Shown: positions 2,319-43,568 of the stretch, in pieces | Position numbering within the stretch: the stretch's first letter is position 1 | Layout of the letters: every line of letters begins with the position of its first letter | Virus record (IMG/VR): IMGVR_UViG_3300032288_004964 | Location: 124,001 to 188,000 of that record | Reading direction: 5' to 3' (one strand) | DNA: 64,000 nt | Notes under the pieces: model-generated | The model's database searches: none | What the model was told of the DNA's origin: nothing | Seen by the model: the letters and a program-made list of their open reading frames with translations, nothing else | Translations under genes and position numbers: made by a program

Positions 2319-2636
2319 ATGAAAATTAGAAAATTTAATGAAGATGAAGAAGTAAATATTTCATCTGAAAGAGTTGATGAAATACTAAAAGAATTAAAAC
2401 AATTCTCATCACAATTAGGTGAAAATTCAAAAATGATGGAATCTCTTATTAATGAGCTTTCTAATTATAAATCAGATACTACTAAAGGTAATGATCAAAT
2501 AGATGATTCTATTGCATCATCACAATTTGTTAAATCAAATATTGATGATGCTATTGATAAAGTAGATAATGTGATAAATAACCTTATGGATTATAATGAT
2601 AAAGGTAGAAAATATTTATACACAGAAAATAAGTAA
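2319..2636 (+). CDS. Coiled-coil hypothetical protein with CTS-like N-terminus
   Basis: Starts MKIRKFNE; heptad pattern. Confidence 0.7.
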   Translation: MKIRKFNEDEEVNISSERVDEILKELKQFSSQLGENSKMMESLINELSNYKSDTTKGNDQIDDSIASSQFVKSNIDDAIDKVDNVINNLMDYNDKGRKYLYTENK

Positions 2637-2641
2637 TTAAT

Positions 2642-3451
2642 ATGAGATTAAAAGAATCATTAAAAGATTTAATAGTAAATTCCGTTTTATATACAATTAC
2701 TTTAATTAGAAGCCTTTTTGGTAAAATGGAAAAGAGTAACTCTAATATTACTTCTAAAATGGAGTTAATATTTGAGGATAATTTTCAATCATTTAATAAA
2801 GATGTTTGGAGAATTGGTCAACCTTGGGGTAAATTTCATCCAGGTTCTCCTTATCAATATTATGGAGATGAATCTGTTTTTATACAAAATGACTGTTTGG
2901 TATTAAATCAGATATATTCACCTAAACAATTAACTACTTGGGAAGATCCTAAAGTATATGATATACCTTACTCTGTTGGATTGATAACATCATATGAAAG
3001 TTATGGATATGGATTTTATGAATTTGAAGTAGAACTACCTTATGGTTCTGGATTATGGCCAGCAGTTTGGTTAAGTTGTGTTGATTCATGGCCTCCTGAA
3101 ATAGATATTATAGAAGCTTACTCTGATAATAAAGCTAATTATAAGAATAACTTACAATCAAATTTTCATTTCAATATGGAAGACAAAAAGGAGTCTTCTG
3201 GTGCTAGAAATCATCCAGTTAATGTTCCATATGATAAATTGAAATTGGGTTGCTGGTGGACTAAGGATTTCATTAAAATCTACTATAATGGACATCTAGT
3301 TAGACAAATTACATCTGATTATATTTTAAAATGGTTTAGAGATAAGAAAATGTTAATTATATTAAACAATGCTATTAGACCAGAATATACTAAGGATATA
3401 GAATCTCAAATTTCAGAATTTAGGATTTATAGTGTAAAAGTATGGAAGTAA
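2642..3451 (+). CDS. Glycoside hydrolase family 16 (laminarinase/beta-glucanase-like)
   Basis: GLWPAVW and WPPEIDIIE (ExDxxE catalytic motif); FEDNF and YGFYE segments. Confidence 0.85.
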   Translation: MRLKESLKDLIVNSVLYTITLIRSLFGKMEKSNSNITSKMELIFEDNFQSFNKDVWRIGQPWGKFHPGSPYQYYGDESVFIQNDCLVLNQIYSPKQLTTWEDPKVYDIPYSVGLITSYESYGYGFYEFEVELPYGSGLWPAVWLSCVDSWPPEIDIIEAYSDNKANYKNNLQSNFHFNMEDKKESSGARNHPVNVPYDKLKLGCWWTKDFIKIYYNGHLVRQITSDYILKWFRDKKMLIILNNAIRPEYTKDIESQISEFRIYSVKVWK

Positions 3452-3744: not shown

Positions 3745-4083
3745 TTATCTAATATATCCTGTTTTTTCTTCACCAGTTTTAAAGTTATAACAAGTTATTG
3801 AATCATGACCTGGTACAACAATAACATCACCAAATACAAATGGATTCATTATATCATATTCAAAAATAGCAACTTCAATTTTACCGTCTTTTACAATAAG
3901 TACAAACTCTCTACCTTCTTCATCAAATCCTTCTTTTAATTCAGAACCATCTGGTAATTTACTCAAATTTCTTCCAATTTCTATTTCACCTTCTATTTCA
4001 TCTGCTGTTAATGATCCTACTAATTTGAATCCTAAATCATCACCAGATTCCATGTCTTCGTTAAATTTTCTTAAGTGTTTCAT
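3745..4083 (-). CDS. Hypothetical protein with CTS-like N-terminus
   Basis: Starts MKHLRKFNED. Confidence 0.7.
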   Translation of the reverse strand: MKHLRKFNEDMESGDDLGFKLVGSLTADEIEGEIEIGRNLSKLPDGSELKEGFDEEGREFVLIVKDGKIEVAIFEYDIMNPFVFGDVIVVPGHDSITCYNFKTGEEKTGYIR

Positions 4084-4113: not shown

Positions 4114-4392
4114 TTATTTCAAATCACTAAGACTCATAATCATTTTTTTAGCTTTTTCGGAAAGACCATTTAAATATTGGTCAACATCTTGAATACTATT
4201 CACATCAGGATATCCATTTAAATCCATTTGCAAATTATCAAATGTAAACTCACCACTTAAACCTCCTTTTTTTAATCCATGTGCAAGTCCTCTATAATAA
4301 GCTTGTTCTATTAAATCGGAAATGTTTTTAATAGTTCTTTCTTCAGCTCTTACGAAGTTAATATCTTCATTGAATTTCTTTAAGTGTTTCAT
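4114..4392 (-). CDS. Hypothetical protein with CTS-like N-terminus
   Basis: Starts MKHLKKFNED. Confidence 0.7.
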   Translation of the reverse strand: MKHLKKFNEDINFVRAEERTIKNISDLIEQAYYRGLAHGLKKGGLSGEFTFDNLQMDLNGYPDVNSIQDVDQYLNGLSEKAKKMIMSLSDLK

Positions 4393-4987: not shown

Positions 4988-5518
4988 TTATTTATTGTAA
5001 GTCAATTTATAAATTGTTCTATAAAGTAAAGCAACAACTTCATCAATTAAATTATGTAGATGTGTGTCTTCTTGTTTAATACAAGTTCTTTCTGTTTTAA
5101 CAAACTCAACAACTTGTTTATAATATTCTAATTTATCAGTTGATTTAGTTTCCTTAGTATCAATTACATCATATTCTTCAATAAGACCGTACTGACCTTG
5201 ATAAGTTTCAACTATTTCATCAATGTGTTCAATTACACCAGTGTAATAAGCTTCTAATGCTAAGTGAGCGGCGTGTGAACCCATATCGCCTTTAACAGTC
5301 CAGTGATAAACTTGAGCCATCTCTCTACTTTCTAATAATTTGGAGATAAACTTAGAAACTGATCCAGCTTCTTTACTTTCTTCTTTTTTATCTTCTGCTT
5401 TCTCTTCCGCTTTTTCTTCAGAACCTTCTGGTAGATTTGCTTTTGGCATACCCGCCATCATATCTTGATCCTCATTTAACTTTTTTAGTGGTGTTTTAAA
5501 ATCTGAAAACTTTTTCAT
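4988..5518 (-). CDS. Dps/ferritin-like four-helix protein (phage type) with CTS-like N-terminus
   Basis: YHWTVKG...HLALEAYY...IDEIVE, a Dps-like HW...H...D...E pattern. Confidence 0.7.
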   Translation of the reverse strand: MKKFSDFKTPLKKLNEDQDMMAGMPKANLPEGSEEKAEEKAEDKKEESKEAGSVSKFISKLLESREMAQVYHWTVKGDMGSHAAHLALEAYYTGVIEHIDEIVETYQGQYGLIEEYDVIDTKETKSTDKLEYYKQVVEFVKTERTCIKQEDTHLHNLIDEVVALLYRTIYKLTYNK

Positions 5519-5562
5519 ATTGTTTATTATTTTTAATAGAGTATATATTATTTATTTAAAAT

Positions 5563-6106: not shown

Positions 6107-6165
6107 AATTTGAAAATGTGAAAATTAAATTTAATATATACTATGTAAAAAATATAAGATTATAT

Positions 6166-6432
6166 ATGAAATATGTAAAAAAGTTTGAGTCATTTGTTTC
6201 TGAGAAGTTAGTTGCTACTCAACCAGCTCCTTCTAAACCAGAAGTTGCTCCTGATACAATTGAGAAGCCTGCAATGCCAGCTACTCCAACACCTATTAAA
6301 AGAGATAGAACATCTCCAGTTCCTGCTCCAGCAAAAATGGTAAAAGCAACTGCAATGGATGTTGCTGAAAGATTTATAGAACTTGTTAACAAATCAGGAG
6401 ATGATATTAAAAAATATACAGAGATAAAATGA
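6166..6432 (+). CDS. Pro-rich hypothetical protein with CTS-like N-terminus
   Basis: Start moved to ATG 6166 (MKYVKKFESFVSE), downstream of AATATATA at 6133-6140. Confidence 0.7.
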   Translation: MKYVKKFESFVSEKLVATQPAPSKPEVAPDTIEKPAMPATPTPIKRDRTSPVPAPAKMVKATAMDVAERFIELVNKSGDDIKKYTEIK

Positions 6433-7946
6433 AAAGCTTTGAACAATTTTTAAAAGAGGAAATTTCTATTAAAGGAAATAAAGGTATACCTTCTGATAAA
6501 ATTTCAGATATTGAAAGACAAGGTGCTGAAAAAATCAGAGGAGTTAACCCACAACAATTAATGGGTCAGATCATGGGATTTCTTAGACAATCTCAATCAT
6601 TTACAAGAGGTAAAGAAAAAGAATTAGAAAAACTTGCAAAAGAAGTTATTGAAGATGCTTTTGGATTAGTTCTTGCTAATGTGGATTTAGACATAAATAT
6701 GTTAAAAGATGGCAACAAAATTGCTGAATTCGCTAAGAAAGAAGATGAAGAGAAAAAAGAGGAAGAAGCTCAAGAAGAAGAGGAAGAAGAGGAAGAATCT
6801 CAAGAAGAACCTGAAAATGAAATTGACTTAGAAGCTCAACCATCAAGAGAAGAAATAAAATTAGCAGTAGATAAAAGAAAGATAATGAATAACATTATCC
6901 AAGGTGAAGCTAAAAACACAAAACATATTTTACACTCTGATAAATGTAAAGAAGGATTAGAAAGAATATATGGTGCTAAATGGAGAGAAATCTTTGATAT
7001 TTGGGACAATATGTCTAAAATAGCTGATAAGTTAGATTGGATTATTCCTATTCAACATAAAGCTAATATGATGGAAAATGCTCCAGGTGGTATGGCTGGT
7101 TGTGTTAGTTGTAGATTTCCTAAAAAGAAAAAGAAAACAAAAGACGAAGAAAAAACAGCTGAAGATATTATTAAATCATTAGAAGATGGTGAAGATATGA
7201 TGGATAAGCAAGAAGATATCAAAAAACTTTTAGGAGTAACTAAACCTACAATTAAAGCTAGAGGTATTGATTTCCCTATGTTATTACATGAAACTGTTAA
7301 AGGTATATATGAAATGATTGCTGATGTTGCAATGCCTAAGGGTAAGAAATTAGCAACAGAAGTTCACAGACAAACTTCTTCATTTGCTGATGAAGCTGAG
7401 GATTTCAGATATGGTCCTTACTTAGCACAAGATTTAACAGATTTTATTGCAAAGAACTCTAAAGTAGACAAATATCCAAATATTAAAGAATATGTATTCG
7501 GTAAATTAATTGATTCTAGTAGATGGTCTGATGAAGAATGTTTATTAAATCTTAAAAATGTATTTTTAGAAAGTCCTGAGGGTAGACAACTAATTGATAG
7601 CTTAATTGATGAGACTATTGAAGAATTAGATGAGTATAATAAACAAATGGCTGAATGGGAAGCTAAAAATAAAGATTATGAAGATTCTAAAAAGAATGAG
7701 CCAAGTATTGAAGAAGTTCCAGAGTGGTGGAAAGAAGAAGGTGATAAATCTGAAGAATCTGAAGAAGTAGATTATTCTAAAATGTCTCAAAGAGAAATTC
7801 AATCAATGATTGATGATGCTTTAGATTCCGGAGATTTTGAAGTAGTTAAAAAACTAAGTCAATATCTTAAAGAAGGAAAAGAAATCTATTTGAAAGAAAT
7901 AGAAAGAATTAATGAAAGTCATAAATTTCATACAAGAATAAAATAA
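6429..7946 (+). CDS. Acidic hypothetical protein with CTS-like N-terminus (candidate internal head protein)
   Basis: Starts MKSFEQFLKEE; poly-Glu tracts; contains LLHETVKG. Confidence 0.75.
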   Translation: MKSFEQFLKEEISIKGNKGIPSDKISDIERQGAEKIRGVNPQQLMGQIMGFLRQSQSFTRGKEKELEKLAKEVIEDAFGLVLANVDLDINMLKDGNKIAEFAKKEDEEKKEEEAQEEEEEEEESQEEPENEIDLEAQPSREEIKLAVDKRKIMNNIIQGEAKNTKHILHSDKCKEGLERIYGAKWREIFDIWDNMSKIADKLDWIIPIQHKANMMENAPGGMAGCVSCRFPKKKKKTKDEEKTAEDIIKSLEDGEDMMDKQEDIKKLLGVTKPTIKARGIDFPMLLHETVKGIYEMIADVAMPKGKKLATEVHRQTSSFADEAEDFRYGPYLAQDLTDFIAKNSKVDKYPNIKEYVFGKLIDSSRWSDEECLLNLKNVFLESPEGRQLIDSLIDETIEELDEYNKQMAEWEAKNKDYEDSKKNEPSIEEVPEWWKEEGDKSEESEEVDYSKMSQREIQSMIDDALDSGDFEVVKKLSQYLKEGKEIYLKEIERINESHKFHTRIK

Positions 7947-7952: not shown

Positions 7953-9920
7953 ATGAAACTACATAAGTATAATCAATTTTTAGGTGAAAAGCCATTAAAT
8001 GAAAATCTTGATAAGGCTAAAAAGTTCTTAAAAGATAGATTTATTATATCTACAGCTGTTAAGGATTTAGATTTATTAAAAGGTGAGCTAGCTGCTCAAA
8101 TGGAACATGGTGAAAAAAGAACTTTAAGTTTAAAAGATTTTACACCAGAACAACAAGATGAACTTAGAAAAAAAATCAGAGAGATTAAACTTACTGATGA
8201 ACAGATAAGAAATATTGAAAGAGAACCTGATTTTGTTAAATTAAGAGAATTATTAAAAGATAATTTAGGTTATTTATATAACTTCACTTATATGTATTTT
8301 GTAGAAATGGTTTCTTTTGATGAGATTAAATCTATGTATGATAGAGTTCTTAGTTATGGTCAATTACTAGACAAACTTCCTAAGAAATTTGATGCTAACT
8401 TTATTGATCCAAATGTTCCAAACAATGCTGAAAAGTTAGTTGATGGTTTAGATACATTAGAAGATTATAAAAAGATTAAAAAAGTAGTTGATAAATTAAC
8501 TCCTGAACTTAAAAGAGATTATACAGCAGCTCCTGAAATGATTAAAGATGAATTTGCTCAAGTAGCAAGAGCATTTAATGATTTAGGTAAGAAAAGTGAT
8601 GGTACTATTGATGAGGTTGAAAGAGAAAAGTTATGGAAAACTTTCTTTGGTGAAGTTAGAATTATTGATTCTGATCAAGTAATTCACGGTAAAGCTTATA
8701 AGAAAGGTGATAAAAGGTATTTTGGTCCACTTTTTAGATATAAAAATATTAGAGAGTTTATTAAAGCCGCTCAAAATCACTTAAAAGCATCTGATAATAA
8801 AGATACTATCGCTTTCTATGATAAGATTAATAAATGTAATGAAAAGTTTGGATATTTAGGCGCTGATGTTATGTTTGATGAAGAAGGTATATTAATAATT
8901 GAAGTTAAATCATTCCCAGCTAATGTATTCTTAAACGGTCACACAAGACACTGTATTAAAGATTACATGAGTCAGTGGGATAATTATGTAGGTAATCATA
9001 ATAATAAACAATATTATATTTATAACTTTAATATTCCTCAATATAATAACTTATCTGTTATTGGTGTTACAATTGAACCAGCTCAAAGAATTAGAGCGGC
9101 TCACGCTAAAGATGATAGTAATGTAGCAGGAACAATTAAAAACATTCTAAAGAATTGGGAAAGTGAGTATAAAATAGATACTGATTTATTTACTAATGCT
9201 CTTAAATCAATGACTAAAGAAGAAATTGATAGAAGAGAAAGAGCTAAAGTAGCTGAAAGAGAAATTGTTAGAAAAGGATTAACAATTGAACAAATACTTA
9301 AATATGTAAAAGAAGACGGTGCTAATATTAATAAAGATAATGCTAAGGCACTTGAAAATGCAGTAGAAGAAGGTAATATAGAAAAAGTAAAGGTTTGCTT
9401 AGAATTGGGAGCTTCTCCTAACTTAAAACCTAAAGGACCAGATGCTATTATATCAAAAGCTAAAGGATTAGATATGATTAAATTATTAGTATCTCATGGT
9501 GCTGAATTAACTGGAGATGTATTCAATCAGGTTCTTAGTGATATGGAAGCTCTTGAATATTGCCTTAAAGCTGGATTGGATCCTAACTTTAGTGCATCAC
9601 TTCCTTTTAGAAAAGTTTGTAAAGGTTCTTGGAAAAACAAAGATGAAATTGGAGAAGGTTATTTTGAACCATTTAAAATGTTACTTAAATTTGGTGCTAA
9701 ATTAACTGATGATAGAGGTAGAAATATGATTATTAAATGGGCAGCTGAATATGGTAGGATAGATTTTATTAAGTATTTAGTAGAAAATGGTTTAGATAAA
9801 TCATTTACTGACGGTGACTGGAAAGAAGCTATTACTTGGATTAATCACGCAAGAAAAATGCCAGAGGCTACTAAGAATGAGGTTGTTAAATATTTACAAT
9901 CTAATATAAAAGAAAAATAA
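7953..9920 (+). CDS. Protein with C-terminal ankyrin repeats and CTS-like N-terminus
   Basis: GANIN..ALENAVEEGNIEKVKVCLELGASPN and WAAEYGRIDFIKYLVENG are ankyrin-like. Confidence 0.75.
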   Translation: MKLHKYNQFLGEKPLNENLDKAKKFLKDRFIISTAVKDLDLLKGELAAQMEHGEKRTLSLKDFTPEQQDELRKKIREIKLTDEQIRNIEREPDFVKLRELLKDNLGYLYNFTYMYFVEMVSFDEIKSMYDRVLSYGQLLDKLPKKFDANFIDPNVPNNAEKLVDGLDTLEDYKKIKKVVDKLTPELKRDYTAAPEMIKDEFAQVARAFNDLGKKSDGTIDEVEREKLWKTFFGEVRIIDSDQVIHGKAYKKGDKRYFGPLFRYKNIREFIKAAQNHLKASDNKDTIAFYDKINKCNEKFGYLGADVMFDEEGILIIEVKSFPANVFLNGHTRHCIKDYMSQWDNYVGNHNNKQYYIYNFNIPQYNNLSVIGVTIEPAQRIRAAHAKDDSNVAGTIKNILKNWESEYKIDTDLFTNALKSMTKEEIDRRERAKVAEREIVRKGLTIEQILKYVKEDGANINKDNAKALENAVEEGNIEKVKVCLELGASPNLKPKGPDAIISKAKGLDMIKLLVSHGAELTGDVFNQVLSDMEALEYCLKAGLDPNFSASLPFRKVCKGSWKNKDEIGEGYFEPFKMLLKFGAKLTDDRGRNMIIKWAAEYGRIDFIKYLVENGLDKSFTDGDWKEAITWINHARKMPEATKNEVVKYLQSNIKEK

Positions 9921-11995: not shown

Positions 11996-12074
11996 AGTCT
12001 ATATAGTAAGATTCTACCCTTCTATCAACAAAGCGTTATTTTTATGATATGTGATTTTTAATATATAGATTATT

Positions 12075-12809
12075 ATGAAGTATATTAAGAATTTTAATCA
12101 AATAAATGAATTAGTTAAAAATGTAACTCTTATCAATAGTTACTGTAAATCAATTTATTCAGAAATTTTGAAAATTAACAGTGATGTTAAGATGGATATA
12201 GAAGATGGTAGTATTAAGAGACGTGCGTCCTTTACCGGTCTTAAAGCTCAAGATTCTTCAAATCTTAAGAGGATTTTAAATAAATGGAAATCTTCTTTAG
12301 AAAAAGAAGATATTATTTTATCTTTTCGTGAGCCAACAGAAGAATGGATATCGGTCAACCAACTTGCCATTTACTTTAAAAATAAAATGACTATTAGAGT
12401 TCATCCAAATAGATGGATATTCCATTTTACAAAAGAATCAAAAAAGAATGATATTATAAAGAATGGATTAATACCACATGCTACTGGTGATCCTGGCTCT
12501 GCAACAAAAGGTGGAAACTGGGAGTATCCAAAATCCATATTTGCTATGAATAGTTATGGTAAATCATGGGGAGGTGGACGTGTAATATTCGCTATTAAAA
12601 CTTCTGGATTAAAAAATAAATGGTGGTATGATTTAAATCTCTACGATTCTTCCTCCGGTACAGATGCTATTATGACATTTGAACCTATATCACCAGATAA
12701 CATATATGAAATAAACCCAGAACAATACCGTAGAATTTGCTCATTACCAATGATGGGGTTCTCTGGTGAATCTCTTGATAGAAAGGTGATGGAAATTTTG
12801 GAAAAATAA
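12075..12809 (+). CDS. CTS-tagged protein with putative ADP-ribosyltransferase-fold (KptA/Tpt1-like) C-terminal domain
   Basis: IFHFT...IIKNGLIP...IFA...IFAIKT...EPISPDNI; starts MKYIKNFNQINE. Confidence 0.5.
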   Translation: MKYIKNFNQINELVKNVTLINSYCKSIYSEILKINSDVKMDIEDGSIKRRASFTGLKAQDSSNLKRILNKWKSSLEKEDIILSFREPTEEWISVNQLAIYFKNKMTIRVHPNRWIFHFTKESKKNDIIKNGLIPHATGDPGSATKGGNWEYPKSIFAMNSYGKSWGGGRVIFAIKTSGLKNKWWYDLNLYDSSSGTDAIMTFEPISPDNIYEINPEQYRRICSLPMMGFSGESLDRKVMEILEK

Positions 12810-12813: not shown

Positions 12814-13227
12814 TTAGTGTTTTTTATAATTAAATCTGTTTTGATTCTCAGGAACATGACCTATTTTGGATATTACTAATTCATAGTAAGCATCAGTTGA
12901 TCCAAAGTCTGATGTATAAACTTCTAGCCCATATTGTTTTAATTGAGAACTAACATCTGATATTAATTCAAACACTTTTGGCTCAATATAATGAAGAACA
13001 GGCATATCGGATGGAAAATTAATTGTCTTATCATACAATTCAATTACAAAACAATTATCATCTTCTTCTATTAAAGATGATTGTAATGAGCTTTCAACCG
13101 ACCAATCTAAGTTAGGAAATTCATCAGTAATATAATACATTATTTCTCCTAATTCAGCATATGTAATACCAAAGTCATTTTGAAGAGAGAATTTTTCTAC
13201 TATAAACTGGTGAAATTTCTTTATCAT
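12814..13227 (-). CDS. Hypothetical protein with CTS-like N-terminus
   Basis: Start moved to 13227 (MIKKFHQFIVE), 4 nt after AATATATA; this removes the overlap with the next gene. Confidence 0.7.
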   Translation of the reverse strand: MIKKFHQFIVEKFSLQNDFGITYAELGEIMYYITDEFPNLDWSVESSLQSSLIEEDDNCFVIELYDKTINFPSDMPVLHYIEPKVFELISDVSSQLKQYGLEVYTSDFGSTDAYYELVISKIGHVPENQNRFNYKKH

Positions 13228-13264
13228 AATGTATATATTATTTTGATATTCCATATATTTATAG

Positions 13265-17108: not shown

Positions 17109-17661
17109 TTTCCATATCTTCTATATTTCTTGTTACCCACATAGGAACAACAATTCTATCACCAGATTCTATAGTATTTACCTTATGTAAACACCTTTCA
17201 TCACTTGTAAATATAACAATAGAACCTTTTTTTGGAATACTAACATAGTTATCTATAACTGTTTCACCACCTTTGTAATTATCATTTATGTATGTTACTG
17301 ATGAATAATGTCTATTATTAAATTCACTTTGTTCATACCCATTATCTTTATGTAGTTCCATTCTTTTACCACATCTCCATAAAACAATATCTGTGAGAAC
17401 TGGAAATAATACTTCATTATATAAAGATGATGATATATCAGTAACTTTTCTTCTATGGTTGTCTAGAATTTCCTTTACTACTTTATCTTCAACTTTTTTT
17501 ATTGAAATTCTATCACCATCAAACCATGGTAGAGTATCTATGTTATAAGAGTCCTTTTTGCACTTATCTATCATAAAATTTGATAATATATCACATTCTT
17601 GTTCAGTTATAAAGTTATCAAATCTGTGTATTAAAGGATTGTTTGTTTCTACTTTAAACAT
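17101..17661 (-). CDS. 2OG-Fe(II) oxygenase (prolyl-hydroxylase-like)
   Basis: LHKD...YINDNYKGGE...LHKV..I.SGDR. Confidence 0.85.
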   Translation of the reverse strand: MFKVETNNPLIHRFDNFITEQECDILSNFMIDKCKKDSYNIDTLPWFDGDRISIKKVEDKVVKEILDNHRRKVTDISSSLYNEVLFPVLTDIVLWRCGKRMELHKDNGYEQSEFNNRHYSSVTYINDNYKGGETVIDNYVSIPKKGSIVIFTSDERCLHKVNTIESGDRIVVPMWVTRNIEDMEII

Positions 17662-18095
17662 TATTTCTTTTTTTCGTGTCTTTCTTTAGCTTCTTCTACT
17701 TTTCTTTTCATCTTATCTTTATAAGATTCTTCTTTTTCAACACCAAGTTCTTTAGCCTTTTTGTCATATTCTTTTTGAAGTTCTTTGATTCTTTTAGCTA
17801 ATTCTTCAAGTTCTTTTTTACTATTAGCATCAACTGACTCATTGAATTCTTCTTCTTTAACATCTAAGTCAAAATAGTTTTTTAGAACTTTAATAGTGTC
17901 TACATCATTTGCCATATACCATAATTCTGGTGGAAGTAAAGAAACTTTTTGATCAGCTATTAACTCACCTAATTCAGCTTCATTTGAAAATAATTCAGCT
18001 TCAGTTTCATTAATATCTAATTTAGCAGATCCATTTGTTTGAGGTCCGGGAACTTGTTTATTTTCATTTACAAACTGATTGTATTTCTTTATCAT
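17661..18095 (-). CDS. Hypothetical protein with CTS-like N-terminus
   Basis: Starts MIKKYNQFVNE; internal FNE-S. Confidence 0.7.
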   Translation of the reverse strand: MIKKYNQFVNENKQVPGPQTNGSAKLDINETEAELFSNEAELGELIADQKVSLLPPELWYMANDVDTIKVLKNYFDLDVKEEEFNESVDANSKKELEELAKRIKELQKEYDKKAKELGVEKEESYKDKMKRKVEEAKERHEKKK

Positions 18096-18766
18096 AATTC
18101 TAATTTATTTTGTGGCTTTATTTTATAGTATAAAATAACAGCTAATATTAAGATGTTAGTTGCGTAATTTAGAAGTAATGGTAGGTCTAATTTATCATAA
18201 ACATAAGCTAGTGCGAATATTTCACCAAATGCCCAAAGAAGAACAAATCCCCAAGATATACCATCAGAGTGTTTATCTTTATAAGATTGCCAAGCTTGTG
18301 GAATACCACAGATTGCTAAACAGATTGATCCTAACCAACCCATTATTTCAAATATAGTCATATTTTTAGCCATACTTGCTATACCAGCTTCAGTTAGTTC
18401 ATCTTCAACTTTTTGTTCAGGAACATTATATCCATATTCTGATTCAATATGAGAAGCCAATTTACCGTATAATTCAATAAATTTAGCAGAATCTTTACTA
18501 TTAATATTAGATTTAATTTCATCTAATATTTCTGATAATTTCTCATCTTTAGATTTCTCTTTTCTAATTGTAGATATTTCTTCAATTTGATTTTTATAAA
18601 CTTCTACACCATCTTTTTCAGTTTGAACTGACATAGAGGTTGGTGTTGTAGTTTGAGACATTGCTGGTGAAGTTGCGAGAGCACCCATTAGTCCGGCTGC
18701 TGCGATTCCTCTTCTGAAATCTATTTCTTCATTAATGAAGGTTTCATATGTTTTTAATTTCTTCAT
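18092..18766 (-). CDS. CTS-tagged protein with C-terminal PQ-loop (SemiSWEET-like) membrane domain
   Basis: MKKLKTYETFINE; GIPQAWQSYKDKHSDGISWGF plus three TMs. Confidence 0.75.
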   Translation of the reverse strand: MKKLKTYETFINEEIDFRRGIAAAGLMGALATSPAMSQTTTPTSMSVQTEKDGVEVYKNQIEEISTIRKEKSKDEKLSEILDEIKSNINSKDSAKFIELYGKLASHIESEYGYNVPEQKVEDELTEAGIASMAKNMTIFEIMGWLGSICLAICGIPQAWQSYKDKHSDGISWGFVLLWAFGEIFALAYVYDKLDLPLLLNYATNILILAVILYYKIKPQNKLEL

Positions 18767-18776
18767 AGTTTATATA

Positions 18777-20063: not shown

Positions 20064-20080
20064 TAAACTATATATTATTT

Positions 20081-26255: not shown

Positions 26256-26732
26256 ATGATTAAATTCAGTCATATGATAAATGAAAGTGAAAGTTATAAA
26301 TTTAAATTAGGTTTAGATTTACATGGTGTTATTGATTCAATGCCTAAAGAATTTGCATTTCTAACAAATGCTATTGTTTCTGCTGGTGGTGAAGTACACA
26401 TATTAACAGGTGGTTCTTGGACACCTGAATTGGAAAACCAAGTAAAATCATATGGTATAAAATGGACTCACAGTTTTTCAGTTTATGACCATTTGATAAA
26501 AACTGCTAAAACTGTTGGTGAAATACAATTCCCGGATGGTACTATTCAAAAGAAATTTGAGAATGGTGTTTGGGATCATGTAAAAGCTGATTATTGTAGA
26601 GAGAACGGTATATCATTGCATATAGATGATACACTAATTTACAATGATTTCTTTACTACACCATTTGCTAGATTATGGACTCATACTAATACACCAAAGG
26701 GGTCACATAAAGATGTAAGACATTTAGATTAA
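26256..26732 (+). CDS. HAD-like protein with CTS-like N-terminus
   Basis: LGLDLHGVI...ILTG...K...HIDD; starts MIKFSHMINES. Confidence 0.65.
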   Translation: MIKFSHMINESESYKFKLGLDLHGVIDSMPKEFAFLTNAIVSAGGEVHILTGGSWTPELENQVKSYGIKWTHSFSVYDHLIKTAKTVGEIQFPDGTIQKKFENGVWDHVKADYCRENGISLHIDDTLIYNDFFTTPFARLWTHTNTPKGSHKDVRHLD

Positions 26733-31376: not shown

Positions 31377-32729
31377 TTATTTAGATAAGTATCTCTTTAA
31401 GTCTGAATTAATATCTTTATTTAAAGCTACTGAATCCACATCTCCCCAATCCGAAAAGTGTGGTTCCATAGAATAGTTAAAACCCATTTCTCCGCAATAC
31501 TCCTTGAATAAGTCTACTAAGTCTCTACCCTTTAAATATTCAGCATCTGTATTTTCAGTCCAATCATTATTAAATTGAATTATATAGAATGTCACCATTT
31601 CTTTATACTCTTTTCTGGTTTGATTGCCTTCGGCATCTTTTGTTGTATAATATTTAGTAACTTCTTTTTCTGTTTTAGTGTATGAAAATTCTTTTTCAAC
31701 TATTTCATCAAATTCATCAAGAATTTCTTTATAGTTTGAATCAACATGAGCATTCATTTCCCAGTCTCCAATAGTTTGTCTTACTTCTTGACAGATTTCA
31801 GAATCCTTACATAATTGCTTTAATGTTGTATAAAATCTTTCCTTTAATAAAAAATCAATAACTTCATCTTCTGATTTATCTTTAACACTTTCATATGCTT
31901 CATCTGAACACTCATCACCAATATGATTAATCATACTTTCTAATCCACCAACTTCTTTAATCATAGATTTTACTAATAAAACTCCATTTTCCTTATTTAA
32001 TGTATATTCAAACATTGATAGTGTATCTGGTTGATAATCATGACCATAGTAATTATCATACATATTCTCTTCACCTTTTATTAAAATATCTTTATAATCT
32101 GATTTTCTTGATAACATAGCATCTGCCATATCTTCTATATCAACATGAATATAAACATTATCACCTTTTACTTCACAACTACTTTCCCATTCATAATAAT
32201 CAACTAAGTCAGCTTGTGTGAATTTAACTAATTCTTTTTGTTTAACAAATAGTGCTATATAACCATCAGCTTCTAACAATTCTGGTTCAGATGAATTCCA
32301 ATTATCTGTAAAGAATAAACCTCCTTTAACTTGTATGCCTTCTATATCTCCAATACCACCATCTGTATCATGTATAGATATATCAGCATTAGCTTTTTCT
32401 TTTATTATACTATAAGCAAATTTGATAGAATCACTAACATCTTCATTAGATACTCTATCACTTTCAGATATTCTAATCCAGTAAGCAGGTCTAATAGAAT
32501 CACCGGCTAAAACTTTTTCAGTAAAGACATCTTTTTCGGTTGATGGTTTATTGTAATGATGTTGAGTTACTTTTTGACAAAAGCCAAATTCAACTTCTAT
32601 AATATATCCTTCATCATCTAAATCTCTTAGATAATCTTGAATCTCATCTTCTGTTATTTTCCAGATAGATTGTTCTTCTATATCTTCTTTAATAGATTCT
32701 TTTATGAAGTCTAAATACTTTTTAATCAT
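31377..32729 (-). CDS. Acidic hypothetical protein with CTS-like N-terminus
   Basis: Starts MIKKYLDFIKESIKE. Confidence 0.75.
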   Translation of the reverse strand: MIKKYLDFIKESIKEDIEEQSIWKITEDEIQDYLRDLDDEGYIIEVEFGFCQKVTQHHYNKPSTEKDVFTEKVLAGDSIRPAYWIRISESDRVSNEDVSDSIKFAYSIIKEKANADISIHDTDGGIGDIEGIQVKGGLFFTDNWNSSEPELLEADGYIALFVKQKELVKFTQADLVDYYEWESSCEVKGDNVYIHVDIEDMADAMLSRKSDYKDILIKGEENMYDNYYGHDYQPDTLSMFEYTLNKENGVLLVKSMIKEVGGLESMINHIGDECSDEAYESVKDKSEDEVIDFLLKERFYTTLKQLCKDSEICQEVRQTIGDWEMNAHVDSNYKEILDEFDEIVEKEFSYTKTEKEVTKYYTTKDAEGNQTRKEYKEMVTFYIIQFNNDWTENTDAEYLKGRDLVDLFKEYCGEMGFNYSMEPHFSDWGDVDSVALNKDINSDLKRYLSK

Positions 32730-34543: not shown

Positions 34544-35728
34544 GTGATAAACAAAGATAACTTCATATTTGAAACATTTTTGAAACTAACATCAAATACA
34601 TATCCATATGGATATGAAGAAGTATTAGCAGAAGAAATGATTAAATCAGGTCTTTTTCCCGAACAAATTCAAAAAGACCAACACGGTAACTATTTTATAA
34701 AAATTGGTGAATCTAGAACTGTATTTACCTCTCATTTAGATACCGCTTGTAAAGACCACACTTCTGTATCTCATGTTTTAAGAGGTAACATGATTGAGAC
34801 AGATGGTAAAACTATTTTAGGTGCTGATGATAAAGCTGGTATGACTATTATGTTATGGATGATGTTACATAATATTCCAGGTCTTTATTACTTTTTTATT
34901 GGTGAAGAAGTTGGTTGTATTGGATCTGGATTAGCTTCTAAATACGGAGATTTCAAAGGTAAATATGATAGAATGATTTCATTTGACCGTAGAGGTTTAG
35001 ATTCTGTAATCACTTATCAATCTTCTTCAAGATGTTGTTCAGATGATTTTGGTAAACAATTAGCAAAACAATTAAATAAATCAGGATTAGGATTAGCTTA
35101 TAAAACAGATGATACTGGTGTTTATACAGACTCTGCTGAGTTTGTTGATATTATTCCAGAGTGTACTAATTTATCAGTTGGTTACTATAAAGAACATACT
35201 ACAGGTGAGAAACAAGATATAGAACATTTAAAGAAATTAGCAAAAGCTTGTTTATTAGTTAATTGGGAAGAATTAGTTACCAAGAGAGATATGACTAAAA
35301 CCGAGTATAAATCTCATAACTATGGATATGGTTCATATGGAAGAAAAACAACACCATCACATAGATGGTCTTATGATAATGATAATGATAATTGGAGGAG
35401 TCGTGACTTTGGGACTAAAAAATCGGCTAGAAGAGATTATGGATATCATGATGATTGGTATGACCAAAGTGAGTCTTTTAAGAAACAAGGTAAGAAATAC
35501 TATGACAATGGAAGTGGACTAATTGATATCACTGAAAATAAAAAGATTGTTAATACAAACTCTAATAAAAGAGGAGATTCTTATGAGTGGATTATGTCTA
35601 AATTTGTTGGTAAACTAACAGAAGATGATTTAGATATTATAAAAGAACAATATTTGGATTTAGATAATAACTCAGATAAATTATTTTATACTTACTTAGT
35701 TCAGTATGTTAGCGAGCAAGATCAATAA
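34544..35728 (+). CDS. M20/M28-like zinc peptidase
   Basis: SHLDT, LGADDKAG, GEEVG, SFDRRG, YYKEHT. Confidence 0.85.
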   Translation: MINKDNFIFETFLKLTSNTYPYGYEEVLAEEMIKSGLFPEQIQKDQHGNYFIKIGESRTVFTSHLDTACKDHTSVSHVLRGNMIETDGKTILGADDKAGMTIMLWMMLHNIPGLYYFFIGEEVGCIGSGLASKYGDFKGKYDRMISFDRRGLDSVITYQSSSRCCSDDFGKQLAKQLNKSGLGLAYKTDDTGVYTDSAEFVDIIPECTNLSVGYYKEHTTGEKQDIEHLKKLAKACLLVNWEELVTKRDMTKTEYKSHNYGYGSYGRKTTPSHRWSYDNDNDNWRSRDFGTKKSARRDYGYHDDWYDQSESFKKQGKKYYDNGSGLIDITENKKIVNTNSNKRGDSYEWIMSKFVGKLTEDDLDIIKEQYLDLDNNSDKLFYTYLVQYVSEQDQ

Positions 35729-35921
35729 TATCTTTTGTCTTTATTATTTCATCTGGAGCATTCTTAATTTTAGAATTAGGAATGTTGTGTGTAACTTTAT
35801 AGGATTGTTTAGATACTTTCTCAAGTATTTTAACAGGTGTAATCATATCATTATACCAATATTCTATAAGAATGATATCACCTTCATTGTAAAAAGATTT
35901 ATATTCAAGTAAAAACTTCAT
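35709..35921 (-). CDS. Small SH3-like protein with CTS-like N-terminus
   Basis: MKFLLEYKSFYNE; AATATATA-GTTT-ATG. Confidence 0.6.
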   Translation of the reverse strand: MKFLLEYKSFYNEGDIILIEYWYNDMITPVKILEKVSKQSYKVTHNIPNSKIKNAPDEIIKTKDIIDLAR

Positions 35922-35935
35922 AAACTATATATTAA

Positions 35936-41000: not shown

Positions 41001-43183
41001 GTAATATTTATATAGATACTAACTCTTCAACAAATAAATTAGTATTTGGTGAAGATTTAAAATTAGAATGGCAAAGTTTATTACAATATACATATGTTGA
41101 TGTTAGTTTATCAGCTTGGTCTAATATATTGACATCTACCGGTTCTACAACATTTAATACTGATAAATTATTAATTATTAATAAATATGAAACAGATAAT
41201 TTCTTAGGAGGTGGTCAAAAAGCTTATATTATAGAATTTCATAAGAAATTAAATTATAGTTTATACTATGATATTGAGTTTGTTTCTATTACATCTAGAA
41301 GATTTTTATCACAGATTAGTAGTGATTTACAAGATTTGTCTAATACTCAAAGATCATCTTCTACTAAACAAATAGCTACTGGATATACTTATTCTAATTA
41401 TGAATCCGATTTAAACTTTAAGTTTCCTACAGATTCATATGCTAAGATTTTATTATCTGATTCAGATGTTATTGAGAATCTAAGTGGTGTTATATACACT
41501 GACTATAAAAATGAATTAGCACTTAATATAACTAAATTAGATAAAGAAGTTGAGGTTTCTATATTATCAACTACTAATTTTGCAACAGGTTCAAATAACT
41601 ATCTTTATATCGCATGTTCTGATAAACACGGTCTGAAAGAAGGAGATGGTGTTGTTTTAGAATTTACTGGAGGAACTGGTTCTTCTCAAGATTTAAATCC
41701 TCAGTATTTTGGATTTAATACAGTTGGTACTTTTCCCGGTGATGACTATAACTTATTTGTTTATACTCAATTTGGTGTACCTTCTTTAATAGGATCTGAT
41801 CCTGGTACTATTAAATATGTTAGAAAAGATCCTTTCTTTAACTATCAACCTGTTGATTTAATTGACTTAGGTGTTGATAGAAAAACTAAAATATCTATTA
41901 ATTTACAACCAGAAAATACTGATTTGGTTGGAAGTGTACATAAATTAGTTGATGTTGATTATACTAATTATAAATTTAAATTACTTGATGGATTAACACT
42001 TGATATTATTACTACCTTATATCCTTGGTTATTAGAAGCTGAGATATCAGATGCTATTATAGGAATGGATGCTAATATGAATTTAATTTGGTATACTGGT
42101 ATATGGTATTGTGGTAGATGGTTTGGTAGTTCTAATGGTAAATTAGCTACTTGGGTATCTGGTATATGGATATCAGGTGATTGGTATGGTGGTATTTGGA
42201 AATCAAATTCAATTACTAATAAGCTTATTTCAGTGGATATTCAAAAAGTATCAAATACTACAAATTCTAAATGGTATGATGGTAGATGGTATGATGGTGT
42301 TTGGGAAAATGGTACTTGGGAAAATGGTAGATGGTATGGTGGTACTTGGAGTACAGGTAACTGGTTTAATGGTATTTGGAATGATGGTACTTGGATAGAT
42401 GGTAACTTTACCGGTGGTGTTTGGGTTTTAGGAAAATGGAAGAATGGTATATTCAACACAAATAACAAACCTGCTTATTGGTTAGATGGAACTTGGGATG
42501 GTGGTGATTTTGAAAATGGCATTTGGTATAATGGTATCTGGGACCAAAAAAATAACAAAAAATCTAGATTTGGTGTTAAATCATTTAATAGCAGAACTTC
42601 TACATGGCATGCTGGTAAATGGGTCACTGGTGAATTTCATAGTAGATTAAATTTAAATGATCAAGGGTTACCTGATGTCTCATCTGTTCATAAGTTATCT
42701 ATTTGGAGAACAGGAATATGGTCAAGTGGTGATTGGTATGGTGGGATTGCATATAATATTAATTTTAGATCTGGTACATGGCATGGTGGTATTTTAGAAG
42801 ATATACAAATATGTGGTGTAGATACAACTGATAATACATTTCAGTTAAATGGTATATTTAAATTTAATATTGGAGATACCATAAAAGTCATAGATAATCA
42901 ATATGGAGGGTCTTTTTCAGTTTATGGTAGTAATGACATACCAACTACATATACGGTTTTATATCAAACAGAAGACGCTGCTGGTAAATTCTCAACAATT
43001 TATGTTGATGAAAATTTAACAGGAACTTATTCAATAACTGAAAAAGATTTGAATTTAAGAATTGCTAGTTACTTTGAAGGTTCTAATTGGAATTCTGGTA
43101 TCTGGATGAATGGAATATTTAATAATGGATTATGGGATGGTGGTATTTGGTACAATGGTGTATTTAATGGTACTTGGGGATAA
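38033..43183 (+). CDS. Large virion structural protein (BNR/YCF48-like propeller plus GxWxx pentapeptide repeats)
   Basis: IDGVTLKEGHRVLVKDQ; YTDDGGHNW Asp-box; many G-x-W-x-x repeats near the C-terminus. Confidence 0.7.
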   Translation: MWKLDEYNKWYRQTDSLTKENYDYLKQTLDSVRFYSKCLSGATYYPVNDLNNIYDILGYYVPRNWYVVSPYGTPTIPATYPRAISATTSTEYFDKYSEEYGLTLKNLFTPKRLIDDSLNNFIYVDVCSTEEIQNIADVKIGLIIDGVTLKEGHRVLVKDQRTNVTLSNLIDPDSYFYPTNYYGADNQAVGSVDTDYYYYNEFNGIYIYKNSKLVKETDLDVYADCVRYSICVKLGSTNKDKQFHLTRMRDGYYPTTSENLPIEFKEKHNWIIRNKVDYNNVLDLNYYDILKHSTQTYYDSVTDFTYSIPERLIAVGEFGGIINYQNEIEHIINNKYKVNIRSITEVNGYYWTCGDEGTLLKVSKIDFSIEKSNINVLSSLRSISFFNDLRGVLVGDFNIIYYTDDGGHNWNQINVDDFSGYSYNKVIYYSINKFYVGGDSGVFLEFILTSGEWTINKKRVAKYIDDDDEYILVEDINSIVPFTSSNWGLTYSYGTSSIPSYKEGLMLVTNNNHFIVYNLNGFVDYDFLYLDFGPTYSYGDINSVTWKSDTNEFYFAGQEIYSFDINNFQTIGSSMSNIIYGATGATLSQNVYANSIRDYNQSVLLVAGNNSLFDYATYSYLIDEVLDSTFGVRLKSKLLFLDYDIASKLNFFDDQQNYRLPDSVTFSTYSTFSTSTYLNLKPLSGETNWLTYWSDRLKTFEYYSNSPLSDSSKVEMSFTFSHTNKNTSVTFTSSIVTISYNDIYNLAPHIGDTSTFGPGVTGSPQLSRYNGYGLTAVSAPTSSHSLFLYDYLMIIKSNSLNYVGVGDLVRFESDVVSDNFIINKKVIIGTHSYLYLYTEFNQNILNDIKSSTQSITITNLNKYGNLSELETRFNLHPISNAYEFSYTTASVTGTSSLLNHIQISPKFNYLTSYYNLASEVNFSGITYSMSYEDTFLKFGYKPTYDISSYLENINSLLFSPSKEFLAMPNYNSIPGVDYQYYTGFSGLTAGNIYIDTNSSTNKLVFGEDLKLEWQSLLQYTYVDVSLSAWSNILTSTGSTTFNTDKLLIINKYETDNFLGGGQKAYIIEFHKKLNYSLYYDIEFVSITSRRFLSQISSDLQDLSNTQRSSSTKQIATGYTYSNYESDLNFKFPTDSYAKILLSDSDVIENLSGVIYTDYKNELALNITKLDKEVEVSILSTTNFATGSNNYLYIACSDKHGLKEGDGVVLEFTGGTGSSQDLNPQYFGFNTVGTFPGDDYNLFVYTQFGVPSLIGSDPGTIKYVRKDPFFNYQPVDLIDLGVDRKTKISINLQPENTDLVGSVHKLVDVDYTNYKFKLLDGLTLDIITTLYPWLLEAEISDAIIGMDANMNLIWYTGIWYCGRWFGSSNGKLATWVSGIWISGDWYGGIWKSNSITNKLISVDIQKVSNTTNSKWYDGRWYDGVWENGTWENGRWYGGTWSTGNWFNGIWNDGTWIDGNFTGGVWVLGKWKNGIFNTNNKPAYWLDGTWDGGDFENGIWYNGIWDQKNNKKSRFGVKSFNSRTSTWHAGKWVTGEFHSRLNLNDQGLPDVSSVHKLSIWRTGIWSSGDWYGGIAYNINFRSGTWHGGILEDIQICGVDTTDNTFQLNGIFKFNIGDTIKVIDNQYGGSFSVYGSNDIPTTYTVLYQTEDAAGKFSTIYVDENLTGTYSITEKDLNLRIASYFEGSNWNSGIWMNGIFNNGLWDGGIWYNGVFNGTWG

Positions 43184-43211
43184 AATTAAATTAGAAATTA
43201 ATATATAGTTT

Positions 43212-43568
43212 ATGATTAAAAAGTATTTTGAATATATTAAGGAATCTCAAGATGACAATAAATATCAAGAATTAGAGGATAAAGTTATTTCTTTAATTCA
43301 AGATACTGTTGATACTGAAAAACAATATGATTCTGTTGATTCTTTTGTTGATGCCTTTATAAAAAAAGGTGATGTTGAGATAAGAGGTTTGATAAAACAA
43401 GATGATCTTTATCAGTTTTACTTAGATTGGAGAAATGATATAGATGAAATACTAAATAATATCAATTTCTTTGATGAGGTACCAAGTAAGATGAATTCTA
43501 TTGGACTTTATGACTATATCATAGCTGGTGTTAAAAGAGCTGTTAAAGAAGTAGTTAAAATGATTTAG
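43212..43568 (+). CDS. Hypothetical protein with CTS-like N-terminus
   Basis: MIKKYFEYIKES; AATATATA-GTTT-ATG. Confidence 0.7.
   Translation: MIKKYFEYIKESQDDNKYQELEDKVISLIQDTVDTEKQYDSVDSFVDAFIKKGDVEIRGLIKQDDLYQFYLDWRNDIDEILNNINFFDEVPSKMNSIGLYDYIIAGVKRAVKEVVKMI

Follow-up and report, generated by a model that had tools for sequence, protein, structure and literature searches.

A capsid-targeting-like N-terminal tag on sixteen proteins of a huge freshwater bacteriophage

Phage T4 loads a small set of proteins into its head by means of a capsid targeting sequence (CTS), carried by the internal proteins IPI, IPII and IPIII and by the Alt propeptide and cut by the gp21 prohead protease. T4 ipII and ipIII begin MKTYQEFIAE, with the tag core YQEFIAE, and ipI begins MKTFKEF...ITE. 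Within the CTS, residues 4 and 7 are the targeting determinants, residues 8 and 10 direct processing, and gp21 cuts after L/I-x-E. In the giant phages phiKZ, 201phi2-1 and SPN3US, many different head, inner-body and ejection proteins are packed in a large head and are processed after Glu by a diverged gp21-like protease; in SPN3US gp47 a propeptide precedes a transmembrane segment. The propeptides of these giant phages are mostly 80-270 residues long and are not a shared short tag, their motif is S/A/G-x-E, about 8-19 proteins are processed, and the phages belong to a different capsid lineage.

Here, we analysed a window of 64,000 nucleotides (positions 124,001 to 188,000 of IMG/VR record IMGVR_UViG_3300032288_004964) from a Mahaphage-type huge phage of freshwater origin. 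The initial annotation had proposed that about 16 diverse proteins of this window begin with a T4 CTS-like N-terminus, and this observation is confirmed. All 16 N-termini are present (Table 1; genes are referred to by the position of their start codon). Three of the starts (6166, 13227, 20063) are internal ATGs of longer, mechanically called ORFs, and the gene caller of the source assembly also uses the 6166 start. The pattern [FY]xx[FYM][ILVY]xE occurs within residues 2-15 of 10 of 71 genes, while shuffling the same residues yields 0.17 on average and at most 3 in 5000 trials. Of the 28 six-frame matches in the window, 10 lie directly behind a start Met. A matrix trained only on LR756502, the complete genome of a relative, places 13 window genes above the 99.9th percentile of internal sites, against 0.4 expected, and all 13 belong to the set of 16. 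The remaining three (4083, 4392, 20063) belong to a sub-class, MKHL[KR][KR][FY][ND]E, which lacks the second aromatic and recurs about 34 times in LR756502. All 16 N-termini contain hydrophobic-x-Glu ending at residue 8-16, compared to 14 of 55 untagged genes (p = 5e-8).

Table 1. Tagged genes and late-type boxes in the 64-kb window, with the start of the LR756502 orthologue or homologue where one was identified.
Coordinates	Strand	Product	N-terminus	Late box or position relative to a box-led gene	Further observations
2319..2636	+	Tagged gene, 105 aa	MKIRKFNED; sub-class without a second aromatic; FNE ends at residue 8	2289-2296	LR756502 orthologue keeps the tag (MKKIRKFNES)
3745..4083	-	Tagged gene, 112 aa	MKHLRKFNED	No box of its own; downstream of 5518	LR756502 homologue starts MKHLKKYNES
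4114..4392	-	Tagged gene, 92 aa	MKHLKKFNED	Same - strand run as 5518	No LR756502 homologue
4988..5518	-	Tagged Dps-like protein, 176 aa	MKKFSDFK...KKLNE, then an acidic disordered linker and a four-helix bundle	5542-5549	Pfam DUF5856, 8.7e-15; PHROG 858 covers residues 45-175; AF2 pLDDT below 50 for residues 1-50, confident bundle for 50-174; Foldseek finds Dps structures; N-terminus conserved in 120 relatives
6166..6432	+	Tagged gene, 88 aa	MKYVKKFESFVSE, then a Pro-rich linker	6133-6140	Matrix score 15.4
6429..7946	+	Tagged gene, 505 aa, no assigned function	MKSFEQFLKEE; same register as the T4 tag (aromatics at residues 4 and 7)		LR756502 orthologue starts MKNFSKFLEE
7953..9920	+	Tagged ankyrin-repeat protein, 655 aa	MKLHKYNQFLGE		Pfam Ank_2, 9e-10; LR756502 orthologue starts MGIFKYNQFIGK (first Glu lost, second L-x-E kept)
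12075..12809	+	Tagged gene, 244 aa	MKYIKNFNQINE	12060-12067, 15 nt from the ATG	No LR756502 homologue
12814..13227	-	Tagged gene, 137 aa	MIKKFHQFIVE	13232-13239, 12 nt from the ATG	
17661..18095	-	Tagged gene, 144 aa	MIKKYNQFVNE, then a Gly/Pro/Gln linker	Downstream of 18766	Top matrix score, 20.6; LR756502 orthologue starts MIKKWNQFINE
18092..18766	-	Tagged PQ-loop membrane protein, 224 aa	MKKLKTYETFINEE, then a hydrophobic, signal- or TM-like segment	18771-18778	Pfam PQ-loop, 6.3e-13; LR756502 orthologue starts MRNIKSYKDFANEE
18777..20063	-	Tagged gene, 428 aa	MKHLKRYDEGFLDYF (sub-class)	20069-20076	LR756502 homologue starts MKHLKSYNEGLLDYF
26256..26732	+	Tagged gene, 158 aa	MIKFSHMINE, directly before a DLHGV motif	26244-26251	HAD assignment not confirmed; PHROG 13623 (function unknown); LR756502 orthologue 81% identical, starts MIKFSNMINE
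31377..32729	-	Tagged gene, 450 aa, no assigned function	MIKKYLDFIKE	Variant TTATATATAG, 4 nt before the ATG	No LR756502 homologue
35709..35921	-	Tagged gene, 70 aa	MKFLLEYKSFYNE	35926-35933	LR756502 orthologue has FYNV (that Glu lost, LLE kept)
43212..43568	+	Tagged gene, 118 aa	MIKKYFEYIKE	43200-43207	Directly before the structural block; LR756502 orthologue starts MIKRYSQFIKE
44079..44086	+	Late-type box before the untagged 919-aa conserved structural gene (44112-46871)			Similar boxes at 46886, 52959 and 56340 precede other large, untagged, structural-looking genes; orthologous genes in LR756502 carry the box or a close variant

With the T4 CTS, the tag shares the form of a 10-19-residue N-terminal leader starting MK, an aromatic pair at i/i+3 corresponding to the targeting residues, a terminal aliphatic-x-Glu corresponding to the processing determinant, and its attachment to unrelated, fast-turnover accessory proteins. 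It differs in its variable register, with the first aromatic at residue 4-7, in the frequent Asn at P2 (x-N-E), in the sub-class without a second aromatic, in the late box only 12-16 nt before the ATG of many tagged genes, and in a protease fused to a repeat scaffold whose unit resembles the tag (see below). It also differs in scale, with 16 tagged genes in this window and about 140-150 genes tagged above background in LR756502, against 3-4 in T4. The initial annotation had interpreted the shared N-terminus as part of a portable promoter-plus-tag module that recruits arbitrary effectors into the head, on a much larger scale than in T4, and this interpretation is partly supported by our in silico analysis.

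The association with a promoter box, claimed in the initial annotation, holds. The sequence AATATATA is a positional promoter box, found within 35 nt upstream on the same strand in ten of the 16 genes; 32729 carries the variant, and the other five lie downstream, on the same strand, of a box-led gene. In LR756502 the box precedes the portal, protease, capsid and terminase genes, and 37% of box-led genes are tagged, against 8% behind host-type boxes. An equal frequency of the motif in early genes had been named beforehand as evidence against the packaging reading, and the tag is instead rare behind host-type promoters. In the window's own contig, tail-fibre-like genes carry the box, and replication genes carry neither box nor tag. 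The promoter-plus-tag unit is not obligatory, however, as about half of the tagged genes in LR756502 have no box of their own.

Since the box often lies close to the start codon, we considered whether the conserved first codons reflect translation initiation or leaderless mRNA, with a box 12-13 nt before the ATG giving transcripts that start at or near the AUG and selection acting on the RNA for ribosome loading rather than on the peptide. The box lies 12-16 nt from the ATG in most box-led tagged genes but 25-37 nt from it in structural genes, and N-termini in general are richer in A/T codons than gene bodies. Against this reading, shuffling destroys the pattern, as described above, and synonymous codon usage in tags equals that of untagged N-termini, with both synonymous codons in use. 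Conserved positions exchange L, I and V, or F, Y and W, which share little at the nucleotide level, and orthologues keep the pattern through amino-acid changes. Several untagged genes have the box at 12 nt, while half of the tagged genes have no adjacent box. Moreover, the tag is absent from the sampled 50 kb of Tenacibaculum phage PTm1, which has 29% GC and a Bacteroidetes host, and is therefore not a general AT-rich start bias. We consider an RNA-level effect very unlikely; the tag is selected as a peptide.

With the tag removed, the proteins are mostly unrelated. Of the domains proposed in the initial annotation, ankyrin (7953), Dps-like (5518) and PQ-loop (18766) are confirmed, while ART-like and HAD were not recovered from Pfam, PHROGs or the ESM Atlas. 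These observations bear on the possibility that the shared N-terminus is merely inherited, either within a very old, fast-diverging paralogous family or through gene starts spread by recombination between conserved promoter-start cassettes, and has no targeting role. In favour of this, the 0-110 kb part of LR756502 is an array of about 60 small tagged genes, with an 11-member BLAST cluster, such that part of the tagged set is a paralogous expansion, and with a second shared helix motif. About 100 genes carry the box 12-16 nt before the ATG, and most of those are tagged. In contrast, 74 of 90 trimmed proteins have no detectable relative among the others, the tags form N-terminal extensions on independently recognisable folds, and the Dps-like protein has a 50-residue leader, predicted to be disordered, before its folded bundle. 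The tag also occurs at different registers from the Met, and it is maintained by purifying selection across lineages with 42-88% identical proteases. Simple inheritance therefore appears unlikely.

New evidence on the possible role of the tag comes from the head module of LR756502. This genome encodes a T4-type portal (1e-57), a gp23-type capsid protein (4e-28) and, between them, a 699-aa protein that shares invariant NRNxRxY, GExxHP and SSR blocks with T4 gp21. A profile of this protein hits the T4 prohead protease (PDB: 5JBL) at 3.9e-7. The gp21-type protease is fused to a helical scaffold with 11 tandem 14-mers, YSEY[IL]AENLDKNI, which resemble the tag. The protein accounts for 11 of the 57 internal matches to the tag pattern in the whole 203,000-aa proteome, spaced 14 residues apart in a region modelled, at low confidence, as one long helix. 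All 120 nearest homologues and LR756501 have 9-14 such units. Under an unbiased matrix, however, the scaffold repeats rank only in the top 0.1-3.4% of internal sites and not at the very top, and the dominant LR756502 tag (MKHLKxYKIFES) is less like the repeat than the tags of the window are. In the window genome itself, the protease-scaffold gene was not recovered, and its presence is inferred from relatives.

We postulate that the shared N-terminus is a T4-type capsid-targeting propeptide, which is the best explanation of the data and, in our estimate, slightly more likely than not. In this view, the tagged genes are transcribed from, or in operons behind, the late promoter box TAATATATA, together with the head and tail genes. 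Their first 8-16 residues, with basic residues after the Met followed by the aromatic pair and aliphatic-x-Glu, are predicted to be flexible, or helical when bound, and imitate one unit of the repeat Y-S-E-Y-[IL]-A-E-N-L-D-K-N-I-x that makes up the scaffold half of the protease-scaffold protein of this lineage. The tag would dock on this coiled-coil core while the prohead is built, thereby enclosing the attached protein; the protease would then cut after the Glu, as it is expected to cut the scaffold repeats, and free the cargo inside the head, from where it would enter the next host cell with the DNA. The existence of these parts, the promoter association, the composition of the tag and its likeness to the repeat are shown in the sequence, whereas docking, enclosure, cleavage, release and injection, and hence presence in virions, are inferred by analogy with T4. 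As the proposal rests on sequence alone, with no RNA run listed, these phages may, rather than do, pre-load their capsids with a very large protein cargo.

Several properties of the tagged set fit less well with packaging. A set of about 140-150 tagged genes per genome is far beyond any known cargo set, and the multi-pass PQ-loop membrane protein fits poorly with free capsid cargo; several other tagged proteins have a TM- or signal-like segment behind the tag. In LR756502, hydrophobic-x-Glu follows 68% of tags, against 26% of internal aromatic pairs, but 32% of tags lack it nearby, and the Glu is lost in some orthologues. The size of the set and its membrane or TM-like proteins could point to a late-protein interaction or processing handle that is not for packaging, recruiting proteins to some other late structure such as an assembly site, the membrane or the tail, or acting as a pro-peptide that lets the head protease activate or destroy proteins on schedule without their ending up in the virion. 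The late-promoter link and the protease-site-like motif fit this reading as well as they fit packaging. However, the only protein with multiple internal copies of the motif is the head protease-scaffold, and T4 provides a direct precedent for packaging, so that we regard this alternative as unlikely, although it is the strongest of those considered.

The same design is seen in the cultured Sphingomonas phage PAU (GenBank: JQ362498), a relative by capsid protein (26% identity), for which we found no paper describing it. The PAU tag differs in sequence, with L-Y-E rather than an aromatic pair, and protease and scaffold are separate genes. Within the 42 kb sampled, the tagged genes were clustered at the head module rather than spread over the genome. 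There, 13 proteins around the portal, protease, scaffold and capsid genes share an N-terminal MK[TS][LI]xxL[YF]E[AS](KLNE[AS]). The scaffold itself carries this tag, and two further tagged proteins, gp142 and gp154, are annotated as internal capsid protein, which speaks against a handle unrelated to packaging.

The window has a G+C content of 28% and codes on both strands. TAA, TAG and TGA all serve as stops (52, 10 and 9 times, respectively), giving no sign of recoding. Its closest DNA relatives are the uncultured phages LR745206 (635 kb) and LR756502 (642 kb), and Al-Shayeb et al. placed the 634-735 kb genomes in the 'Mahaphage' clade with predicted Bacteroidetes hosts. The window is part of the ENA scaffold KRAE22-1 scaffold_4, which comprises 207 kb, and near-identical DNA occurs in freshwater, groundwater and plankton metagenomes. 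The first 44 kb of the window (1-44 kb) are syntenic with LR756502 at 272-314 kb.

The initial annotation had described about 16 diverse proteins with an N-terminus like the T4 capsid targeting sequence, and this observation holds: all 16 N-termini are located at the start Met where they had been placed. Gene calls in our analysis are mechanical, but the gene caller of the source assembly independently uses the same starts where the two could be compared. The pattern [FY]xx[FYM][ILVY]xE lies in residues 2-15 of 10 of 71 genes, while shuffling of the same residues yields 0.17 on average. A position matrix trained only on LR756502 places 13 window genes above the 99.9th percentile of internal sites, against 0.4 expected, and all 13 belong to the originally listed set. 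The remaining three belong to a recurrent sub-class, MKHL[KR][KR][FY][ND]E. Further weak tag candidates outside this set, for example MKRKNKLILEFTEFNLQ with a box 17 nt upstream, score below our threshold. In T4, the targeting determinants are hydrophobic or aromatic residues spaced i/i+3 (residues 4 and 7); 12 of the 16 tags show [FY]xx[FYMI], and the four of the KFNE/KRYDE sub-class do not. The processing determinant of T4, L/I-x-E, has its counterpart in all 16 tags, as each carries hydrophobic-x-Glu ending at residue 8-16, against 14 of 55 other genes. P3 is L, I or V in 12 and F or Y in 4, and the enrichment is confirmed in LR756502.

The tag behaves as a peptide rather than as an RNA or composition signal. 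Synonymous codon choice inside the tags matches that of untagged N-termini, with both synonymous codons in use. The information lies in codon positions 1 and 2, and conserved positions exchange L, I and V, or F, Y and W. Orthologues keep the pattern through substitutions, as exemplified by MKKLKTYETFINEE against MRNIKSYKDFANEE. A 50-kb sample of Tenacibaculum phage PTm1 (29% GC, Bacteroidetes host, same capsid lineage) shows no such tag. Our detection rule fires on 3-5% of genes in the PTm1, Lak-A2, LR756500 and T4 controls, which in T4 includes all three real IP genes. A leaderless-mRNA or translation effect is weakened by the shuffle and codon tests, and by tagged genes inside operons. The tags also differ from Sec/Tat signal peptides, as they are amphipathic and acidic at their end and lack a hydrophobic h-region; in the PQ-loop protein and a few LR756502 proteins a hydrophobic segment comes only after the tag. 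This segment is part of a recurrent architecture, in which a tag ending NEE[IV] is followed by xW[RK]KG and then by a hydrophobic signal- or TM-like segment, one with a lipobox-like LLATAC. The arrangement recalls the SPN3US ejection protein gp47, where a propeptide precedes a TM helix.

With 16 residues trimmed, the 16 proteins of the window give only two weak BLAST pairs. In LR756502, 90 trimmed tagged proteins fall into 74 BLAST components, the largest with 11 members. The tagged proteins thus do not constitute a single paralogous family. Of the domains proposed in the initial annotation, ankyrin, PQ-loop and Dps-like are confirmed, whereas the ART-like and HAD assignments were not recovered from Pfam or PHROGs, and ESM Atlas searches with two large tagged proteins gave only unnamed viral clusters. 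For the Dps-like protein, which has a 44-50 aa extension before the family domain, an AF2 model with 36 homologues predicts residues 1-50 as disordered and residues 50-174 as a confident four-helix bundle that matches Dps structures. Across 120 relatives this family keeps MKKFSDFK, then a variable spacer, then [IL]-[NF]-E, followed by an acidic linker, a two-part layout that parallels T4 IPI (MKTFKEF...ITE). The adjacent gene encodes a second ferritin-superfamily protein, Ferritin (Pfam 1.5e-19). Both have N-terminal extensions, but only the Dps-like DUF5856 protein carries a clear tag, the Ferritin protein starting MEIKKFG. Four tagged genes have no LR756502 homologue, so the set turns over quickly. 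Common descent or the spread of a cassette as the origin of the shared N-terminus is weakened by tags on independently recognisable folds.

The putative late promoter box AATATATA is not over-represented in the window as a whole (26 copies against 23 expected), and only its position and orientation are significant. It is the most enriched 8-mer in the 80 nt upstream of genes, preceding 22 of 71 window genes and 199 of 976 LR756502 genes. In LR756502 the box, or a one-base variant, precedes the portal, protease, capsid, terminase, sheath-like and other structural genes at 25-37 nt. In the window it precedes large untagged structural-looking genes, and in the window's own contig it precedes tail-fibre-like genes, while the DNA polymerase, helicases, RNR and ThyA have neither box nor tag. 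A second upstream motif, TAnnTTTG (for example TATATTTGTAAT), marks a different set of genes, 65 in LR756502. It resembles the Bacteroidetes housekeeping -7 promoter box, probably marks early genes and supports a Bacteroidetes host. In LR756502, 37% of box-led genes are tagged, against 8% behind TAnnTTTG and 10% with neither, although half of the tagged genes have no box of their own. In tagged genes the box usually lies 12-16 nt before the ATG, and in many of them it ends only 4-5 nt before it, against 25-37 nt in structural genes. If the geometry matches that of T4 late promoters, these mRNAs would be nearly leaderless. As searches of sequencing runs listed only DNA runs, both leaderless transcripts and late expression remain inferences, the former from the spacing and the latter from the strong association with the box. 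T4 gp55, the late sigma factor, was not found by phmmer. A 121-aa LR756502 ORF near the head genes aligns only weakly with it (25% identity over 111 aa, pairwise E = 5e-4), and this possible late sigma factor for the TAATATATA box is not relied on here.

LR756502, the nearest complete relative, encodes a T4-type terminase, sheath, portal (Pfam 1e-57) and gp23-type capsid protein (4e-28). Between the portal and capsid genes lies a 699-aa protein, whose first ~200 residues share the invariant blocks NRNxRxY, GExxHP and SSR with T4 gp21 and with the annotated 'prohead core scaffolding protein and protease' of PTm1. A phmmer search of the 699-aa protein against PDB found nothing, and only a profile of these domains hits the T4 prohead protease structure 5JBL, at 3.9e-7. 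In that crystal sequence the aligned His and Ser are both Ala, which we read as mutated catalytic residues. The rest of the protein contains 11 tandem 14-residue units, Y-S-E-Y-[IL]-A-E-N-L-D-K-N-I-[AS] (repeat region at residues 277-450), and is the only place in the proteome with more than two internal matches to the tag pattern (11 of 57). This region is predicted as one long helix by a single-sequence AF2 model, which is of low confidence (pLDDT 41) and is used for this prediction only. All 120 nearest database homologues carry 9-14 such units at period 14, as does the 735-kb LR756501. The T4 tag core is Y-Q-E-F-I-A-E. With an unbiased matrix the repeats rank in the top 0.1-3.4% of aromatic-anchored internal sites; the resemblance is clear but not extreme. 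In the window's own genome, five steps of walking over 47 kb of its contig reached replication and glycosyltransferase genes but neither the head module nor a protease-scaffold gene. No protease was found in the sampled Lak-A2 locus. Small ORFs resembling parts of the major capsid protein were observed as well. A 165-aa protein of LR756502 has an N-terminus (KWKPIIQSLGVTGSRADW) like the leader of the capsid protein (KWGPVLENMGVTGDRIDW), and a separate 67-aa ORF in the window's own contig has a Pfam Gp23 hit; these may be capsid-leader-like accessory proteins.

By our two rules, which were tuned on these genomes, 181 of 976 LR756502 genes are tagged, which is 140-150 above background. They are spread along the genome and are densest at 0-100 kb; a stretch of roughly 100 kb (11-110 kb) holds about 60 small tagged genes, MK[HY]LKxYK[IL]FES, many with a second shared acidic helix motif (xxDILLELxD), constituting a large lineage-specific expansion. 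Eighty IMG/VR loci holding the protease show tags next to the head module, including lineages only 42-49% identical, with tags such as MKNLQTFSEFINE and MIHLKTFEEFINE. As these distant lineages also have repeats and tags, a contrast between lineages with and without canonical repeats could not be drawn, and no clean test of co-variation emerged. Chryseobacterium phage MA9V-2 has MKNFFSFINEA and MKTFTYFINEA beside a 1207-aa protease-scaffold studded with xINE[SA]. In Sphingomonas phage PAU, 13 proteins around the head genes begin MK[TS][LI]xxL[YF]E, including the scaffold gp152, as well as gp142 and gp154, which the depositors annotated 'internal capsid protein'.

We postulate that the tag is expressed late and docks on the repeat scaffold by imitating one of its units, and that the attached protein is enclosed, cut after the Glu by the gp21-type protease and released into the head for delivery with the DNA. 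The parts and their associations are shown by the sequences, whereas docking, cleavage, packaging and injection are inferred from T4, where the 10-residue tag alone packages foreign proteins at 20-200 copies per head; no proteome was found for this uncultured phage. The initial annotation's proposal that a portable promoter-plus-tag module recruits arbitrary effectors into the head is supported in part. A late interaction or processing handle that is not for packaging cannot be excluded, and is favoured by the sheer number of tagged genes and by membrane-protein cargo. The T4 tag, its portability and its presence on varied proteins in T-even phages are established, and giant phiKZ-like phages pack many processed proteins but use long, dissimilar propeptides. 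We found no paper describing such tags in Mahaphage-type or PAU-type phages, the only prior hint being the GenBank annotation of PAU. New here are the scale, the lineage, the tag-like scaffold repeat and the short-leader late cassette.

In T4 the targeting tag is a classic tool, but only three or four natural cargo proteins are known. If our reading holds, the largest known phages use the same principle on a scale one to two orders of magnitude larger, which would help explain what some of their many unknown genes are for, namely early-acting, injected proteins such as DNA-binding Dps-like, ankyrin and membrane proteins. In its most far-reaching form, which we regard as unlikely on present evidence, Mahaphage-type huge phages would load well over a hundred different proteins, around 15% of their coding repertoire, into the prohead by a short tag imitating one unit of the coiled-coil repeat of the protease-scaffold, and the same protease that dismantles the scaffold would then release the cargo. 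The capsid would therefore deliver a pre-made proteome, and the binding partner of a T4-type targeting tag would be identified. The resemblance between the tag and the tandem scaffold repeat also suggests a concrete, testable docking mechanism. Furthermore, the tag gives a simple sequence rule for predicting virion-borne proteins in uncultured phage genomes, and cultured relatives that show the same design (PAU, MA9V-1/2) make the idea testable at the bench.

Locations of the features described in the window, in its contig and in LR756502. L001, L004-L006 and L008 are loci of LR756502, and L030 is a locus of the window's own contig.
Feature	Sequence	Position	Strand
Ferritin gene	window	4410-4976	-
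Tagged Dps-like (DUF5856) gene	window	4988-5518	-
Tagged ankyrin gene	window	7953	
Tagged PQ-loop gene, with tag, xW[RK]KG and hydrophobic segment	window	18092-18766	-
Further genes with tag, xW[RK]KG and hydrophobic segment	LR756502	56658, 395896, 544849 and 580926	
Late-type boxes ending 4-5 nt before the ATG of tagged genes	window	13232-13239, 18771-18778, 26244-26251, 35926-35933 and 43200-43207	
Large untagged structural-looking genes preceded by the box	window	44112, 46915 and 56372	
TAnnTTTG motif, upstream 15-25 nt	window	9979, 21911 and 34544	
Weak tag candidates	window	1609-2283	-
Weak tag candidates	window	11264	-
Weak tag candidates	window	26734	+
Weak tag candidates	window	30810	+
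Structural-looking block	window	44112-61402	+
Long untagged run	window	21-31 kb	+
PhoH gene	window	36898-37707	
165-aa capsid-leader-like ORF	LR756502	L001:25256-25753 (about 315.8 kb)	
67-aa ORF with Gp23 hit	window's own contig	L030:4531-4734	
121-aa ORF weakly similar to gp55	LR756502	L008:17128-17493	
Array of about 60 small tagged genes	LR756502	11-110 kb (L004-L006)	

The structural-looking block behind late boxes comprises 919-aa and 381-aa proteins that are conserved in LR756502 with no family hit, a 762-aa collagen-repeat protein, an 829-aa Laminin_G_3/ConA-like protein and a 1676-aa protein, which are probably tail or fibre components. The long untagged run encodes Metallophos, GreA/GreB-like, two NUDIX, DUF7831 and RNA-ligase proteins, and the PhoH gene lies behind a late-type box.
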